DNA of 63,525 nucleotides, filler included, from Intoshia linei (lineage: Eukaryota > Animalia > Orthonectida): NCBI GenBank assembly GCA_001642005.1. It is 6 parts of 6 records of this genome, joined end to end, with 100 filler letters (N's around TTAATTAATTAA, not from the genome) between each part and the next. Parts side by side here need not be neighbours in the genome. Positions count along the whole stretch, not along the records: positions 38,513 to 48,625 come from LWCA01001306.1; 5 more parts are not named here. One strand, given 5' to 3'. The notes under the pieces were generated by a model. The model did not search any database and was not told the origin of the DNA. It worked only from the letters and a program-made list of their open reading frames with translations. Each line of letters starts with the position of its first letter. Position 1 is the first letter of the stretch. This document shows positions 38,513 to 48,726 of this stretch, one piece after another. A program made the position numbers and the translations under genes.

Positions 38513-41500
38513 TGTAATGAGAAAGATTATTATCTATTATAATTTATAATATAAATAAAATTTATTAATTAAAAATTTTAATAAAGCTGATTGTAATTAA
38601 TAATATATAGTAAATTAAATCAAATAAAATAATATTCATATTATTAAAATTAAAATGACTACTTAGGCAAATCAAAAAATTTTTTTTAAAATCAATTACA
38701 GTCAAAATAATTAGTTATTTAAAAATAACAAAAAAATTTAACGGAATTTCACCATTAATATTAACATGTGCATTAGGACAGAGCCCAACATACCATGAAT
38801 TATAAAATCATCCCTAATTGATTTTTTTAAATTAAAATTCATTTATAAAATAAAAAAAAATTGATAAAATTTTTTTAAATTGTATTTCAGACTTACGGAC
38901 AACAGACATATAGTTTTGACCCCGAATCGGGGACAATTATTCAAGGAATATTGTTGTTGTTGTATGGGTCAAATAAATAGAATTATAAAGAAAGAATATC
39001 GAAAAATATTGATAAAACTCATATGTATGCCAAAAAAAATATCAGGGGAGTACATGATTTTTAATTTTTAAAAAAAGTTGCAATTTCTTTCTTACAAATT
39101 AAATATATTACATATATACATGTATTACATATTTCATATATATTTATATTTTAATATTTTTTTATTATATTAATATTTTGAATTTATATTATACTATATA
39201 ATATGTATTATATAATAATGTTATATGTAATATGTAACATAACTTATTACATTTATAATATAAAAAATTTTTAAATTTACATTATTAAGCTGGTAAATTT
39301 GACATATCATGTAAAATACATTAATTACTATTTAACTATTTTACTATACTATTTAAAAAAGTTTCAAATTTTACCTATATTATAATCAGTATTGTACACT
39401 ATAAATATGGTATACTGTTGTGTATGTCAAATACTTATTTTTGTAATTATTATATATCATAGTTTTCATGGGTTGATAATTTTTTTTGAATTTTTTAATC
39501 ATATCTAATTTTGGATATTTTTATGTAAAAAAAAACAGTTAAGTTAGTGTAAGTTAAATCATGATATTTAAGATAATAACATATGTGTATGTAAGACTAG
39601 TGAATCCATTATAATGTGAATAACTACATTTTAATTTATTATAAAATTAAATTTGTAAATAAATCTGCAAAATAATAACTATAATACTAATTAAAATCTA
39701 AAGTAGATACACATTTAACGCGATAAAAATGTTGAATCTACTTTGATAAACATTTCATTATTATACTAAATAAATAATAGATGGTATTAAATTTTTATTT
39801 TAATTAAACATGTATTGATTAAATTTTAATATAATAGATGGTAAATATTTTACATTATAACTAAACAAATAATATTTATACAAATATTTTTAATTTTTAT
39901 ATTTTTAACTATTTTGATATTTATTTATTCAAGATTGTAAAATTTTATTTGCAAATTTTAAATTATTATTAATAATTATCAATTAATAATAATTTATAAT
40001 CTATTAAACAGATAGTATGTTAATAAATATAAATACCAAATTTAACAAAATATATAATATTAAATTAGGACAGAGCAGAACCTATTAAGTTCGAGGCCAT
40101 CCGAAAATAAAAAATAAGTCCATAAAAAAATTTTTAGAGTCGATGGGTGTCAATTGGTCACATAGAACCTAGCTATCCTATAAAACTATTGAATTGACAT
40201 TTTAAATTTAACACAAAAAAAGTAATAATATTAAAAGATGTAAACTGTAAGGTTTTTAAAAGATTTTAACAAATTGTCTTTACTTTTGTAATTTATAATG
40301 GTAGTCAATGAATTCACCGACTCAATGGGAATATGACCAGAGTTCTCTATTGAAAAGCCTCCTAAGGATATAAAGCATTCTATTATCTGTTAGAACATCT
40401 ATTTTTTCATTTTCATTGGATCCCTTTACAAATTACCATAATATAACATTAATTTTTAATGTAAATAATAATTAATTTAATGTAAAATAATGTATTCATA
40501 ATTTATTATAATAAATACATTAATTAACTAATGAACTTGTAAATTAAATAAAATTATGATTTATTTCAAAATATAGACGGTATAACTTGTTTTCAAATTT
40601 AAAATATCAATAATTATTATAATAATAGTCATTAATTATAATTTATATATTATAATTTAAAAAGACTGTAAATGATTAGTTATTAACTATATCTGTCAAA
40701 TGAAAAATTTGTTAAATTATCAAAATTAAAATTTAGTACGTAATACATATTAAATAAATTATCATTATATATCAATTTTTTCTAATTACTTTGAATTTGA
40801 CCACTTTTGTTACAATAATGTTTATATGGTTCACAATAAATGAATGTAAATATGGAGATTAAGTACTATAATGTAAGAGTTTAGATAAACTATTTTATTA
40901 TCAAATTATAAAGTACCTGTGAAATTTATTTAAAATATGTATTCTCATTTTTCACTAATATTTATATGCCACGAAAGATTAAATTTTCCTAATAATACAT
41001 ATATTTATTACATAAATATACAATTCAAATTAATATAAATTTAATTTAGTAAGTAATATTGTAATAATGGGACAAAATATATCAATAAAAGAATTAATAA
41101 TAATATGATAAGAAATTATTAATTTATTAAATTATAATAGATGGTACTTAATGATTAGGAAAAATCGTATTTCTGTTATTACACGTAACTTACGTGACGT
41201 AAGGCAAATTATAACACCAAATAATTTTTATAGACTGTAAATTTATTAATTATTTATATATCCTCCATATGTATATATATGTATATATGTTAATATATAA
41301 ATTATAATCATAATATATTTATTATATGTAAAATAGTAAATGTAATCAATCAAATGATGTAGACGGTAAATATACACGTTTAGATACATAGAATAATGAG
41401 ATAGTTCATTATGTTTTTGTTATTCATTATTTATTACATTTTTACTTTATGAATTAGACGGTATATGCGATTAATAATTATTTAAATTAACATTTAAATA

Positions 41501-44500
41501 ATAATGAAATTTAAGAAAGTAAAATTATTCTTCACATTAAATTTAAAGTTGCATATAATCAATTTCATACCATATAATAAATATCAGCTGAGTCAACCTC
41601 AAATCCATGATCGATCTTAAAATTTAATTTACATTATAATATATAACATAATATACAAAATATATGCATGTATCATAATTTTGAAACTTTTTTTCTAATT
41701 GCAATATATGCTAAGAAAAAAGTAGATTATAGTCCATAATTATACTATTAAAGTAGACATGTATAATATACATATCTAGAAATTAAAAACTAATCGTTTA
41801 ATTGAAATGGCTGATATACATTGTACATTGCATATACAGTGGAAGTAGCTGGTAGTGATCATATTGGGACACAGTAGTTTTAATCATGATATACATCTGA
41901 TCATACTACGCTATTTTTTTAAATGAAGGTACATTTATTTATTTAAAATACTCGATGAAAGTTAAGATATGAAACATTCTTACTCATAAAATTAAATGTT
42001 GGTAAAAATGTGTGTCTGTTGAATCATTTATTGAGATAACTATCACCGTCCCATATATTTTTAATAAAAATTAAAAGTCTCTTTTTCCGATGAAGAAAGT
42101 AATATACATTTAAAACTAAAAATTGGCAGTTTCACGACCAAAACCACAATTTACCCTAGAATTTTAAAAAGCAAAAATTCTATAATATATAAATTCATTA
42201 ACATTTTCTATTAATATAGTATTAATAATATTCTAAAATGTACTAAAATGTAGTAGAGAAATTTTAAAAAATATTAGTTATTTCCAAAAATTTTTTAATC
42301 TCGCAAAGTCACGCCTTCACCGCAGTGGCGGATCTAGGATTTTCATCCAGGGGCGAAATAATTATTAGATGCCCAAACGCATATAATTTATTTAAATTGG
42401 AATTTTGACACTAAGTTTATTAATATATTTCTATTTATAATAATTTATATTTTTTTTCTAGTTTCCATTCTACTAAATTTGTCAATGTTGTAACATTCAA
42501 ATACTGTTGAGTGGTTCAACTGCATCAAAATCGACTTTTTGGGCAAGTTTTCGCAAATGTACGTTAAGTCCGATAATCTAACTTAAACTGATATTACTAG
42601 CATAAAAAATAATACATAAAGTAATGATGAATGATCATTATACATAAAACGTAAACGATGGTCCTAGAATTTTTTTTTAATTTTTCGCAATTTTAATATA
42701 CAAATTAAATAAAATATTTTAGGGCACATTTGTCACGCCAGGGGGCGGCTTTTTCTATTATCAGTTTTTCTATTGAATCGTTAAATTGAACCGTTTTTTT
42801 TAGATGTGACATTTTATAGTAATTTATACTTAACTAAATTAGTTAATATATAAATATATTGAATATTTTAAATTTTTTCATTTTCTACTTTCAAAATTTA
42901 CTTTAGTACAAGTAAATTTAAATTAAATGTTTTAAACATGGACAAAAACAATTTAAAATTATTTAAAATATTCGGCGGCCACAAAAAATTTAAAAAGAGC
43001 TACAAAATGGCCTGCGGGCCACAGGTTGAGAATTACTGCTATAAGCGAATCTAATTTCATAAATTTTAATTATAAATAAATTTGTATAAGCGACTTCTAC
43101 TGAAAGTTAGTAACTATATTGTGATAATATCTTTTAGAAAGTAAAAATTGTCATTAATAATATTACGCAGTAAAAAATTTGTCTACGATACCTATTGTAA
43201 GGAATTTCTTTACAAAAAAGTTTAGTTTGTCAAAGACTTTTCAAAGACTTTTCAAAAATTTTTCAAATATTTGGATTCTGCGGTCTATAACAAAAATTTA
43301 TGAATAATATATATAATAAATGATTTTATTGATTATTATATTGATAACAGCTAGTAACTTTTCATTTATATTTAAAAACGAGGTGGGGAAAGTGCGAATT
43401 TATTCACCATTCGGGGTCGTCTTATGAACAATTTTAAATAATTTTGCAATTTAGAAAAAAATATATAACATTTATATAAAATAAATTTAATTAATATAAA
43501 CAAAAAATATTGCGTTTTATGCGATTTAGTCATTAATTATTGTATCAATAAATAGTATAATAATTTAATAAAAATAGTTTTATGTATAATTAATAATTAT
43601 AAACTAAAAAAAGTTCAAAGATATTATGATATTGCAATTTATTTAACTAAAAAGCTTACTTAACTACTACATTATTAAAATAATCCTACCATTTTGATGT
43701 ACATGTATCTAAAAATTTAAAAAAAAAAAAAAGAAGCCGACGAGTTAAACAAGGTTTGACTCTACTTAAATTTGCATATAACAAAAATTTTATTTTTTTG
43801 TCATAATCTATTTCATTTTATTTTCAATCGCCTTATTAAATTATATAAGCTTGGCTGAGCGGTATTTCCACACTGATCGCTTCCCCACCCTGATTTAAAT
43901 ATAAAAAATTTATCTAGAAATGTAATACTTGACTATTTTGTAAATACAACAATGATTAGTGAGTAAATATATTTTTAATAATAAATATTGCAATGATCAG
44001 GTCTGTGTGTGAAATACTGGTACCGGTAATTATTAAATTTGTCAGTTTTTTCCATGCATAAAAAATTACAGAAAGAATGTAATTTCTAAAATTGACATTA
44101 TAAAATATTTCGTACTACATCAAAAATTTATATTAAATTTTTATAATTCATTATAATTAATACACATAATACATAATTTAACAACATAAAAATATTTTTT
44201 TTTTATTTCTGAGTTTATAATTTATTTTTATGAAATTTATTTCGTTATGAAACATATTGGAAATAATATTCTGCATCAACATATATTATATATTTAACTG
44301 TAAAAATGACTTTAGTACTGGTACTACGGTAGTAGTCCCTTCCGATTAAATAAATGTATATTATCTTAAAATTATAACTGTAGAGGGTATTCTAATTTAT
44401 AGTATAAAATGAAAAACATTTTATGATAGTGATATTATTGTATTAATAAATGTAACATGCCATTTATGCAGTCGGTAATTATTGATGATATTAATTAGTA

Positions 44501-47500
44501 CAGTCATAATTGAGTTAAAAAATAATTCAAAGTATATTAAAAAAGTATATTTAAATAACCGTACAATTTGTACATTTCAATATCAATAGTTGGTAAAATT
44601 TATATTAATTATCATGTACCTAATATATTATACAACTAATTATCGTAAAATCAATTTAATTTAAATATTAGATGGTTTATTTGATTATATTTTTAATTAT
44701 CATTTTATAATTAACTAATCAATAATTATACTATTTTTAAAGTTTTATAAAGCAAAACACAATAATACATTTTATAAGGGGCCACGAATAATATAAAATA
44801 GCTAAAGGGCAATGGAGAGTAAAATGTTGAGAACCACTGATCTAGTTCGCCATATTTTATATTCCTGTTAATATAATTTTATACTTGTGTAAAAACTAAT
44901 TATTAAATTTAATTGACGTATAGATTGTAAATCGTTATTTATTATCATATAATAGTAAATACTGAGTCTATAATAGGGGCCCGCTTAATAATTTTTAATT
45001 TGTTTATTTTTATGAAACTCTACAAAAGAAAAAATGGAATATACGGATATGACTATTACAGAATAATAGTTTGGACAATGATTTGATCCAATTCTTAAAT
45101 TTTTATATGAATTTATAGTTTCATTTATATTTAAATTTAATTTTTATGTTTTATTTAACCCACTTGTAATATGACTAATAATGAATAAAATAGACTTTAT
45201 AATTGAATTTAATATGATTAATTACAGATTGTAATTATTTAGAATTTATAAAATGTGTATAAAGGGTTTGCAATCGGTTTTTATATACAGTCACTTATTA
45301 ATTATGAACATGGTTCATTGAACACGAATCATGAAAAAATAATGAAATTATTTTGATACAATTGTTGAATTGTTAGTTTTTAATAATACATGTAATTAAA
45401 AATCATTTAATTTCATTTAATAGATTTCATTATTTTATTTTGATCTAAGAATGATTTTTATACATTCTCTACTTACCATACTATGCGAAAGCAATATCTG
45501 CGAGTTCTGATGATAAACCTAGACTAAATTACAAAATATTATTAATACATATATGTTAATTAAATGAAAAAAACTAAAATTAATTGCAAACGCTGTTATT
45601 ATGTTATGACAATAATATATAAATACTGAATAATGTTTCTACACAAATAATTATTCACTTTGCTGCTGGATAACCAATTAATCATGCATTTATTGTAACT
45701 ACAATACATTTATATTATATTTACTGAATGGTTTTACTTTCAAATAAATTAATTTAGTGAGTAAAATTTTTCTTTTTACATAATGCACTATATAATAATA
45801 TATAAAGAATTATAGTTATACTACTATTATACTACTACTACTGTAAAATAACAATTTTTAATATGTAATGTAGATTGTAATATTCATAAAGTTTAATATA
45901 CATAGTATTTAAATATTTTAATTTGAATATATTAGCTAAATGTAATATTCTATTAATAAAATATATATTAACATGTGTTATTATTTAAGTTCTTATTTAT
46001 CTATAAGTATTTAATATTAAAATGATAAATATTAAATTAATCAAATTAATTTAATTTTGTAAATGTGATCCATATTGTTTAACATGTAAGATAAAACGAA
46101 TAAATTTTGATAATTTTTAACGTTTTAATTTTATTTGAAAATATTTTTTCATTTTTGAACAAACAATTAATTGATTTTATTTTCAATAATTTTTATCAAT
46201 TAATTTTAATCCCTGTGTACAGCAGACAATACAAAATTTTTAATTAGTTAATTTAAATTGACCCAAAATACAGTTCTACTGTAGCGTTTACTAGAGATAA
46301 TTAGTACGTTTCTGAGGTAGAGTAGCCATTGGTGGTAAGTAACAATTTTAATTTTTAATTGGTTTACATATCGTTTGTCGATCATTATTAATAATAATTA
46401 TTTTTATTAAACTATATAGAATATATTATATATCAATACATTAATTAATAATATTTGTTACAGATAATCAAAATGAAGGTATTATCCTTACTTGTATAAT
46501 ATGCTACGCAATATTTGTTTGTGTGTGTGTGTGTTATCGTTTATTTCAATAACTACCAGTCTTAGAATTTTATAAAGGTCAGATTTCAATTACAGATTTT
46601 TCCGGGACTGTTAGCAAAATAAATTTCAACCTTTCAAACTCACATCTTACGGATCAAAAAGCCCAATTTTTTTTTTTGAAATGGATATGAAATATGGGTG
46701 AAAATCTATATAATTCATTATTCGGAATTTTTTTCATTACTACGCAATTTTTTAATCTTAAATTCTCATTTTCAAAACATTTAAAACATTAAAATTTAAA
46801 TAAGAAACTACAACAACTTTGTTAATATCATATTTATATTACAATCCTTTGCAATATTGGTAAAATTCGAGTGAAATGTTTATAAATTGAAAATTCAGTT
46901 AATTATTGATACATAATTGTTATTTTTAAGTATTTATTAAATTGGTACTGAATTAACAATAGTTTGTCTAAAAAATTATCACATTGAAAATTAAAAAATA
47001 AGTTTTTATAATTGTATTTTATCTGGAATTTATGCTATTTATTATAATTTTTAGGAAATGACTGTTTTAATTTTATTTTTAATATTATACACACATTCTG
47101 TCTAATAAATTAAAAAATGATATAAAAATTGTTATTAAAATGAAATTTAAAAAAAATTGAATTAAAAGGGTGTGATAAGTATTATTTTCTTGTCTGACGA
47201 GTATCTGATATTGATTATGCTATGTATTAAAAAATTAGAATTATAACCTGGGAATATTAATGAACTTACAAATGATAAAATAACATTTCATAAGATTAAA
47301 TGATCTGGAAGTAGTAAAATTTATTATTTTATAGTGTACCCTATCCAACAGTGAACATGATAATTTTTGACACTTTATTGATACATATATTTATTGTATA
47401 TTCAGGATAACTGAAAGTATTTTTAATACAATCACACATCTACATTTATTAAAATGTAAAATTTAATATATAATTAATGACTTTCAAATTGATTGATTAT

Positions 47501-48476
47501 ATTGTAGATAAACCGGGTATTTATATATATTCAACAAATATGCCAATGAAAACGTGTCCATATCTATGAAAATTATATTAATTTAGATGATTATGGTAAA
47601 AGTCTTAATGCATGTTTATCTCTGTTTCATTAAATAATAAAAGTTAAATTTTAGATGACTTTATTGGTATTTTTTTAGTTTATGTACACTTTTTTAATTA
47701 TAGTATATTTTTATAATAAAATTACATATTAGATTGTAATAATTTATGATAACTATTATTAAATTTTTCTACATTTGATGATTGATGATTGTACTATAAT
47801 ACAATTACATAAATTTCAGTGGGTTAATTTTTATAAATATAAATAATTATATTGGAATAGTTCATAAAAAGAAATAGAAACCCGTTGTGTGTAAAATTTA
47901 TAAAATAACTAAGATAATTTATATTACATATGACGGGTGTATACATTATTCTTGCTATTTATCTTGTTAATACATTATCGCAGAAAGTAATTAAATAAGA
48001 TACAATTAATAAATGTTTAATAACGTACAATAAGTCGAATAAATGTATTATTATTTTAGAAAGTAACGAAAATATAATGAAAAAATTATCAATGAAATAC
48101 ATGTATTTTAATATTATACTTAGAGGGTATGATTGTAATTTGCAATAATAATATAAAACGTGATAATATAATTAATATGAATATGTATATTTTATTTTAA
48201 AGAAAGTAATTATCAAATACAACGTATAATAAATTATTATATACCAATTAAACATATTAATACATTTTAATAGTTGGTAAATTATCTTAATTACTAGAAA
48301 ACATGTTTACTTTATATCTATCAACAAATCGCCATTTTTTTATGTAATCGTCAAACATTAATCATTTATATTGGGTTATCCGTTCAAAAAATGTATTTTA
48401 TACATCGCTGGACACGTTTATTATACCCATTATCGTCTACAATACAAAGGTATAATATAAATGTATTTTTTAGTTA
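38513..48476 (+). CDS. Predicted micro-exon gene, block 1: 39 phase-1 exons (33 of 3 nt, 2 of 6, 2 of 9, 1 of 12, 1 of 15); partial at both ends
   Basis: Exon starts and sequences, each flanked by AG and GT: 38587 CTGATT, 39290 CTG, 39781 ATG, 39838 ATG, 39934 ATT, 40012 ATA, 40577 ACG, 40665 ACT, 40737 TAC, 41050 TAA, 41141 ATG, 41234 ACT, 41363 ACG, 41458 ACG, 41516 AAA, 43138 AAA, 43351 CTA, 43960 TGA, 44384 AGG, 44472 TCG, 44590 TTG, 44672 ATG, 44924 ATT, 45228 ATT, 45758 TGA, 45874 ATT, 45936 CTAAAT, 46464 ATAATCAAAATGAAG, 47508 ATAAACCGG, 47587 ATGATTATG, 47655 ATGACTTTATTG, 47733 ATT, 47820 TGG, 47984 AAA, 48060 AAA, 48124 AGG, 48203 AAA, 48274 TTG, 48474 TTA. With the T|GTAATG at 38513 they translate to SDSDDDYNDLLNDYDEKTMKVVDDYLNSKYNQNEDKPDDYDDFIDLEKKEIV. 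Confidence 0.8.
46484..47075 (+). mobile_element. Interspersed Helitron-like repeat (other copies about 61247-62090, and inverted/deleted about 13140-13565 in an NDUFAF3 intron)
   Basis: Begins A|TCCTTACTTGTATAATATGCTACGCAATATTTGTTTGTGTGTG, a TC 5' end followed by a TG microsatellite as in non-autonomous Helitrons. Clear similarity among three loci; no 3' CTAG/hairpin identified. Confidence 0.55.
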
Positions 48477-48726
48477 GTAATGCCAATTTTTATAATATTT
48501 TTGAATCATAGTAAACTTTTAATTATGTATTATATATTTACCAGTGACGTAGCGTCATAGTGTGCAAGGTGTCGCCGAACACCCTAGACAATTTAAAATT
48601 TAAAAAAATTATATTTAATAAATAANNNNNNNNNNNNNNNNNNNNNNNNNNNNNNNNNNNNNNNNNNNNTTAATTAATTAANNNNNNNNNNNNNNNNNNN
48701 NNNNNNNNNNNNNNNNNNNNNNNNNA

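Follow-up and report, generated by a model that had tools for sequence, protein, structure and literature searches.

The 63,525-nucleotide (nt) stretch of Intoshia linei DNA analysed here (hereafter the window; six parts of assembly GCA_001642005.1 joined end to end, filler included) contains, at positions 38513-48625, a part derived from LWCA01001306.1 that carries a dense array of candidate exons of only three nucleotides each. We define a candidate exon as the 3 nt enclosed by an acceptor AG and a donor GTA (AG-N3-GTA), and all coordinates are those of the window. Short words of this form crowd the plus strand and can be picked out by eye (e.g. tAG-ATG-GTAAAT, tAG-ACG-GTAAAT and tAG-ATT-GTAATA). 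The G+C content is about 20% along the whole length of the region, and the genome that carries the array is best read as AT-rich and transposon-bearing. Conventional coding content was rejected, as no open reading frame (ORF) of more than 63 amino acids is present on either strand of 38513-48625 and the G+C-richer segments yield just short junk ORFs. Rfam families gave no match at E<=1 across the same positions. The lack of longer ORFs and of Rfam matches leaves the region without another explanation. A reading of the array as probable micro-exons is well supported by the statistics of its sequence.

The array falls into two clusters on the plus strand. Cluster 1 (39290-45876) comprises 28 AG-N3-GTA sites, where about 3.5 are expected by chance, or 33 sites if every AG-N3-GT is counted; its GT..AG intervals are mostly 54-127 nt in length, and the longer intervals contain repeat-like, G+C-richer inserts. 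The earlier note on this DNA had described 25 consecutive 3-nt exons between these limits, which is a fair count, and the two ends that it gave are exact matches to candidate exons (CTG at 39290-39292 and ATT at 45874-45876). The array extends past 45876, however: after a gap of 1859 nt, 7 more sites (cluster 2, 47733-48476) follow at about one per 106 nt and reach the edge of the piece. Cluster 2 would be either part of the same gene as cluster 1 or a tandem paralogue of it.

Comparison with 200 dinucleotide-preserving shuffles confirmed that the motif array is real and far beyond chance. Over the whole region the plus strand carries 35 AG-N3-GTA sites, against 5.3 +/- 2.4 in the shuffles (maximum 12), and the minus strand carries one. 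The spacing of three is alone in being enriched, since AG-to-GTA spacings of 0-2 and 4-15 on the plus strand give 1-8 sites each, which is background. Micro-exons of 6, 9, 12 and 15 nt were rejected on this basis, as were recursive sites of 0 nt (AG-N0-GTA, i.e. AGGTA; 4 against 7.5 expected). AG-N3 sites with a GTT donor are not enriched as a class. An excess of AG-N4-GTA on the minus strand (12 against 5.1 +/- 2.4) was dismissed as a multiple-testing fluctuation, its members being scattered and having no common context. The signal sharpens when the motif is extended: a strict class, YAG-N3-GTAA, has 19 members against 1.2 expected, and the longer word AGAYKGTA, common to 13 of the 35 sites, is expected only 0.56 times. 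Roughly a quarter of the remaining AG-N3-GTA sites (the loose class) are expected by chance, compared with about 1.2 of the 19 strict ones.

Splice-site-like behaviour of the sites

Four independent properties, namely the site logo, the drift of everything around an intact core, a floor in the gap lengths and a depletion of AG, support the view that these sequences behave as true splice sites. The logo reads YAG-NNN-GTAA(W), and positions outside it carry essentially no information. All 15 one-mismatch variants of the core occur at or near background, and the flanks (+/-45 nt) are scarcely more alike than random windows (mean similarity score 16.2 against 14.9). We found no repeat family carrying the sites within 38513-48625, and a dispersed or tandem repeat bearing the motif was rejected, given the lack of a family over the sites, the unrelated flanks and the background level of mismatch variants. 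As mismatch variants lie at background and the surroundings have drifted, the array would represent an intact pair of signals that is maintained, as selection on splice signals would predict, rather than a decaying repeat.

The distances between neighbouring sites are also constrained. Only one gap is shorter than 57 nt, where 6.1 are expected (P=0.006), and 18 of the 34 gaps measure 57-130 nt, where 6.3 are expected (a value reached in 0 of 20,000 trials). A floor at 57 nt is the pattern expected of a minimal intron length. Introns of at least 54 nt, bunched just over a minimum, are usual in animals with small introns. In addition, the 40 nt upstream of the acceptors contain 16 AG dinucleotides in all, compared with 31 in the 40 nt downstream of the donors, while GA, GT, TG, AC and CT are symmetric between these windows; the upstream depletion looks like the AG-exclusion zone ahead of a real 3' splice site. 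The word TTAAT is found upstream of 19 of the 35 sites against 10.6 at random positions, although the comparison with downstream windows is just 21 to 16 and there is no positional peak.

Reading phase and predicted product

Stops and codons were counted junction by junction, not on a joined sequence. Phase 2 is excluded by 8 in-frame stops (xTG followed by A). Phase 0 contains three stop triplets (TAA at 41050, TGA at 43960 and TGA at 45758) and is unlikely, because all three belong to the strict class, in which so few chance matches are expected; as a caveat, these three sites can also be read as a-GTRAGT. In phase 1 there is one stop junction in cluster 1, from AAT at 44076 to AGG at 44384, both of the loose class, and one in cluster 2, from ATT at 47733 to AAA at 47984, which disappears if TGG at 47820 (with a GTT donor) is used. 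The codons formed in phase 1 would follow a normal coding pattern, with G and A each at 37% in position 1 and A at 66% in position 2, whereas no phase 0 codon begins with G. Phase 1 is thus the best-fitting frame and is favoured roughly two to one over everything else.

In this phase the 27 junctions of cluster 1 would specify Asp 7 times, Tyr, Asn and Leu 3 times each, and Glu, Lys, Thr and Val twice each. The second base of each codon would be the first base of an exon, and as none of the 35 triplets begins with G, the segment could contain no Cys codon; Gly, Trp and Arg are likewise not possible. In this frame the segment would be polar, rich in Asp, Tyr, Asn, Glu and Lys, cysteine-free and of low complexity. 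Micro-exon genes and the bicycle and KQY genes of aphids discussed below suggest, by analogy, that it belongs to a protein that is probably secreted and evolves fast.

The earlier note had presented the array as symmetric phase 1 cassettes whose skipping could diversify a protein residue by residue. A long plus-strand run of splice-site-like 3-nt cassettes is indeed present, and preservation of the frame by every exon is true, trivially so for this length; of the three frames, phase 1 fits best, but its stops are as numerous as permuted exon order would give. Skipping an exon in phase 1 does replace two residues by one encoded by a hybrid codon, as the note had reckoned. The effect would be milder than it supposed, since in 19 of 26 single skips the hybrid codon specifies the same residue as one of the two replaced, leaving a clean deletion of one residue. 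The stops that it foresaw from certain skips arise in none of the 26 single skips (1.2 expected, P=0.23, not significant) and in 15 of 351 multi-exon skips. If phase 0 were used, a skip would remove one residue and create neither hybrid codons nor stops. Single-residue variation by skipping is the published rationale for the micro-exon genes of flatworms, the precedent to which the note appealed. Protein diversification through exon skipping at this locus is a reasonable hypothesis of an already published type.

Gene model and alternative explanations

We consider it probable, though well short of assured, that the region is part of one micro-exon gene, or of two in tandem, encoded on the plus strand with about 30 consecutive 3-nt exons. 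The exons would be bounded by YAG or AAG and by GTAA or GTAT, and most introns would be near minimal size (54-127 nt), the longer ones having received repeat insertions. An exon of 3 nt would be too small for simultaneous occupancy of its acceptor and its donor, and because it could not hold factors at both ends the introns would probably be recognised by intron definition and removed in sequence; intervals of 54-127 nt suit intron definition. Each ligation would add three bases, so that the next donor would then lie behind a longer exon, and the overall process would resemble a recursive-splicing ratchet that advances by one codon per step. The simplest origin for such an array would be repeated duplication of a unit of one intron and one 3-nt exon, the introns having since diverged to background; this would account for exons that are all alike in length and phase and for the AYK triplet common to 13 sites. 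The chances appear evenly balanced that this full model holds, with a protein segment encoded at one codon per exon by at least about 30 3-nt exons and assembled by an ordered, codon-by-codon ratchet over minimal introns, which would make it the limiting form of a micro-exon gene. What the sequence itself shows is the motif array with its splice-site-like statistics; that the locus is transcribed, spliced and coding, its phase, the secretion of its product and any skipping of exons are inferred from these.

Several observations weigh against the micro-exon gene model. The entire case is built from one sequence of 10 kilobases, within which (38513-48625) neither a signal-peptide first exon nor a terminal exon was found. 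Chance alone should have produced about 5 of the 35 sites, and individual ones are not distinguishable. At the donors, G is present at position +5 in just 2 of the 35 sites, and the pyrimidine tract is weak at the acceptors, both of which may be effects of an AT-rich genome. Phase 1 requires one site of cluster 1 to be dropped and one site with a GTT donor to be added in cluster 2, and the stops in phases 0, 1 and 2 (3, 2 and 8 over 35 sites) match those obtained from permuted exon order (3, 2.0 and 7.1), which leaves an open frame without positive statistical support. Finally, the literature searched describes no gene with more than a few 3-nt exons and none with a long run of them.

One alternative is a non-protein product, in which the splice pairs would be used in an untranslated region, in a non-coding RNA or as stepping stones for the stepwise removal of a long intron, and phase would be meaningless. 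Stops are no rarer than the permuted-order expectation in any phase, the start exon, signal peptide and terminal exon were not found in the region, and the preferences within the triplet (A first, G or A third) can be explained by donor preferences at -3 and -1 alone. We nevertheless regard this as unlikely, since only the frame-preserving length of 3, and not 1, 2, 4 or 5, is enriched, a uniformity left unexplained without coding constraint or common descent. Stepping stones meet the further difficulty that true recursive sites have AG abutting GT, a word without enrichment here (AGGTA, 4 against 7.5), and every step would still retain 3 nt in the RNA. Somewhat more doubtful is the use of phase 0 by a micro-exon gene, with each exon forming exactly one codon. 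When the three stop triplets are set aside, no stop remains in this phase among the other 25 sites of the span; each of the three that were set aside can also be read as a-GTRAGT, and the donors that follow the only AUG of the region in good context (AUCAAAAUG at 46473) are in phase 0. Yet these stops fall at strict sites (tAG...GTAA), where about 1.2 of 19 would arise by chance, and GTRAGT is equally frequent on the two strands (5 and 5). The absence of G-initial codons would rule out Val, Ala, Asp, Glu and Gly altogether, and third positions would be 37% G in a genome of 20% G+C.

A feature of the DNA that is never spliced, such as an old tandem-repeat relic or a cluster of oriented protein-binding sites, would account for the longer word AGAYKGTA in 13 of 35 sites and for the one adjacent pair of sites, 57 nt apart, that is 73% alike over 48 nt. 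This explanation is improbable: one-mismatch variants at background are not what neutral decay would leave, and the flanks are unrelated. The conserved letters are moreover the splice dinucleotides together with Y at -3 and A at +3/+4, and both the 57-nt floor and the upstream depletion of AG typify introns and not binding sites. Lastly, chance or a compositional artefact of very AT-rich DNA would supply some 5 sites and is already refuted, with a negligible probability left to it, by a count of 35 sites where none of 200 shuffles exceeded 12, the single site on the opposite strand and the lack of enrichment at other spacings.

Comparison with known micro-exon systems

Micro-exons were defined in the tapeworm genome paper as exons of <70 nt with a length divisible by three. 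All candidate exons here, at 3 nt in silico, lie within this length definition, and on the second count of the structural definition of a micro-exon gene (MEG) there are 28 + 7 sites where about 5 are expected by chance; the locus therefore fits the definition in silico, if the exons are real. The MEGs of schistosomes have 10-20 exons of 6-81 base pairs (bp), mostly 15 bp, and introns of 0.1-5 kilobases. Like schistosome and tapeworm MEGs, the array is a long run of symmetric micro-exons divisible by three in which skipping would alter single residues, and it shares with them the difficulty posed to gene finders and RNA-seq aligners. It differs in that exon lengths vary within a MEG, whereas here a uniform 3 nt recurs about 30 times in a row between introns mostly of 54-127 nt, and the 20% G+C of the locus is not schistosome-like.

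The exons of aphid bicycle genes (Korgaonkar 2021; Stern and Han 2022) vary in size and number about 17 per gene, and nearly all of them start at codon position 2. These genes also have long introns, CYC motifs and an arrangement in clusters of paralogues, and it is by their structure, not their sequence, that they are recognised. The aphid megacycle gene distributes 2092 amino acids over 118 exons, about 53 nt per exon. The array shares with bicycle genes a large number of small internal exons (here about 30 of 3 nt, far smaller than those described). Exon starts at codon position 2 correspond to phase 1, the frame favoured here, in which stops are not depleted beyond permuted order. Paired CYC motifs are not possible in the phase 1 segment, though some accepted bicycle proteins are also without cysteines, and long introns are not seen, 18 of the 34 gaps being 57-130 nt. 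In the pea aphid gene KQY1a, 33 of 37 exons are <=15 bp, annotated exons go down to 5-6 bp and the introns measure 180-5168 nt (Dommel 2020). The KQY/KHI cassette effectors to which it belongs are small secreted proteins with two to four splice isoforms, found in saliva proteomes (Dommel 2020). They resemble the array in having dozens of miniature exons per gene, but their exons and introns are larger than the 3 nt and 54-127 nt found here. An ORF for the conserved signal peptide that defines the family, with its KQY or KHI motif, was not found in 38513-48625; the 5' end of the gene may lie outside. Because a signal-peptide exon is missing from this piece, CYC motifs are impossible in the segment and the introns are short, the locus cannot be filed as a homologue of bicycle, KQY or MEG genes.

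Isolated 3-nt exons, often alternative, occur in RPS24, cytohesin-1, MAP4K5 and bee ELAV. These cases show that the spliceosome is able to include an exon of 3 nt, and they differ from the array of about 30 in that each concerns a single microexon, or one of three, in an otherwise ordinary gene. An array of 3-nt exons was not reported anywhere in the full-text literature searched, where absence is not proof of absence. At the recursive sites (ratchet points) found in long introns of Drosophila, the AG abuts the GT with a spacing of 0 nt, and nothing of these sites is kept in the mRNA. They resemble the present sites in placing a donor at once after an acceptor, which implies an ordered, stepwise removal of introns; the sites described here have a spacing of 3, with no enrichment at 0, and are far denser, at about one per 100-300 nt.

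If splicing does take place at these sites, no coding sequence described so far would be more fragmented, and the locus would be a natural test of how the spliceosome copes with a long succession of exons that are too short to be recognised by exon definition. Current gene finders and short-read aligners would not see such a gene, and as standard pipelines place no 3-nt exons, whole genes of the host-interface effector type could escape detection. The locus would possibly be the tip of a gene family that has escaped annotation and in which exon skipping varies the products, and would offer a clean system in which to measure protein diversity from single-codon cassettes. A strand-specific scan for AG-N3-GT arrays could reveal such genes in other genomes.

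Candidate exons of cluster 1

The candidate exons are given in order along the plus strand, with acceptor, triplet and donor separated by hyphens. CTG at 39290-39292 (aAG-CTG-GTAAAT, loose) is followed by two ATG exons, at 39781-39783 (tAG-ATG-GTATTA, loose) and, 57 nt further on, at 39838-39840 (tAG-ATG-GTAAAT, strict), whose resemblance (73% over 48 nt) is the sole hint of a tandem duplicate. Next come ATT at 39934-39936 (aAG-ATT-GTAAAA, loose) and ATA at 40012-40014 (cAG-ATA-GTATGT, loose), the latter overlapping an alternative AG-TAT-GTT at 40016. ACG at 40577-40579 (tAG-ACG-GTATAA) and ACT at 40665-40667 (aAG-ACT-GTAAAT) are both loose, and TAC at 40737-40739 (tAG-TAC-GTAATA) is strict, as is the phase 0 stop TAA at 41050-41052 (tAG-TAA-GTAATA), which can also be read as a-GTAAGT.

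The next sites are ATG at 41141-41143 (tAG-ATG-GTACTT, loose), ACT at 41234-41236 (tAG-ACT-GTAAAT, strict), two ACG exons at 41363-41365 (tAG-ACG-GTAAAT, strict) and 41458-41460 (tAG-ACG-GTATAT, loose), and AAA at 41516-41518 (aAG-AAA-GTAAAA, loose). Two further loose sites, CTG at 41849-41851 (tAG-CTG-GTAGTG) and AAA at 42096-42098 (aAG-AAA-GTAATA), precede the long interval that ends at TTA, 43107-43109 (aAG-TTA-GTAACT, loose). This site and AAA at 43138-43140 (tAG-AAA-GTAAAA, strict) are just 31 nt apart, so that at most one of them is usable. CTA at 43351-43353 (cAG-CTA-GTAACT) and the phase 0 stop TGA at 43960-43962 (tAG-TGA-GTAAAT) are strict. AAT at 44076-44078 (aAG-AAT-GTAATT, loose) and AGG at 44384-44386 (tAG-AGG-GTATTC, loose) together form the only phase 1 stop (T+AG) of the cluster.

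The remaining sites of cluster 1 are all strict, namely TCG at 44472-44474 (cAG-TCG-GTAATT), TTG at 44590-44592 (tAG-TTG-GTAAAA), ATT at 44924-44926 (tAG-ATT-GTAAAT), ATT at 45228-45230 (cAG-ATT-GTAATT), the phase 0 stop TGA at 45758-45760 (tAG-TGA-GTAAAA) and ATT at 45874-45876 (tAG-ATT-GTAATA), the final site of the span in the earlier note. Between 44590 and 44924 lies a possible extra exon with a GTT donor, ATG at 44672-44674 (tAG-ATG-GTTTAT). AATAAA occurs at 45955-45960 and 46099-46104, 79 and 223 nt past the final exon of the cluster; these words would fit the end of a cluster 1 gene, yet they are common in DNA this AT-rich.

Cluster 2 and the interval between the clusters

A G+C-richer segment (46273-46334) is located in the 1.86-kilobase gap between the clusters. 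It follows aaatacAG, which is acceptor-like or a possible start site, and ends at a consensus donor, TGGTG-GTAAGT, at 46335. About 130 nt past this donor (46464-46493) lies gttacAG-ATAATCAAAATGAAG, with an ATG at 46473 in a good insect-type start context (AUCAAAAUG) that opens a frame of Met-Lys-Val-Leu-Ser-Leu-Leu up to a GTATAA donor at 46494. The possible donors at 46479 and 46494 are both in phase 0. The features at 46273-46494 could mark where a second micro-exon gene, in tandem with the first, has its 5' end. At 47169-47223, 55 nt between aAG and GTATTA are open from a phase 0 entry to a phase 1 exit and encode 18 mostly hydrophobic residues; this segment would connect the ATG at 46473 to the phase 1 micro-exons, although AT-rich DNA often contains ORFs of this kind by chance. 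Another gene start, at 41926, was considered and rejected, as AAATGAAGGTA recurs (41922-41932 and 46471-46481) but the surrounding 180 nt are dissimilar (score below the shuffle mean), and the recurrence is probably a coincidence.

Cluster 2 begins with ATT at 47733-47735 (tAG-ATT-GTAATA, strict). The possible exon TGG at 47820-47822, with a GTT donor (tttcAG-TGG-GTTAAT), is required for an open phase 1 between this site and AAA at 47984-47986 (cAG-AAA-GTAATT, strict). There follow AAA at 48060-48062 (tAG-AAA-GTAACG, strict), AGG at 48124-48126 (tAG-AGG-GTATGA, loose), AAA at 48203-48205 (aAG-AAA-GTAATT, loose), TTG at 48274-48276 (tAG-TTG-GTAAAT, strict) and, as the final site before the edge of the piece, TTA at 48474-48476 (tAG-TTA-GTAATG, strict).

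Repeats and transposon-like sequences

Two diverged copies of a short repeat, at 42960-43050 and 44765-44860, have in common GGCCAC...AGCTA...GTTGAGAA..ACTG, and about half of their aligned columns are identical. Two of the long intervals contain them, and they resemble transposon remnants within introns. At 43372-43895 a possible miniature inverted-repeat element has a left end, GAGGTGGGGAAAGTGCGA, and a right end, TCGCTTCCCCACCCTG, that form imperfect inverted repeats by eye, with similar ATTTAAA(A/T) words on their flanks; a listing of repeats was swamped by AT-rich pairs and gave no confirmation. Further G+C-richer fragments at 42290-42760 and 48540-48590 (CAGTGGCGGATCTAGG..., GCCAGGGGGCGGC and CCAGTGACGTAGCG...) resemble the ends of DNA transposons, and no ORF was found in them. 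About four copies of an 11-nt tandem repeat, TCAAAGACTTT, occupy 43226-43272, and a (TG)9 microsatellite is located at 46516-46534.

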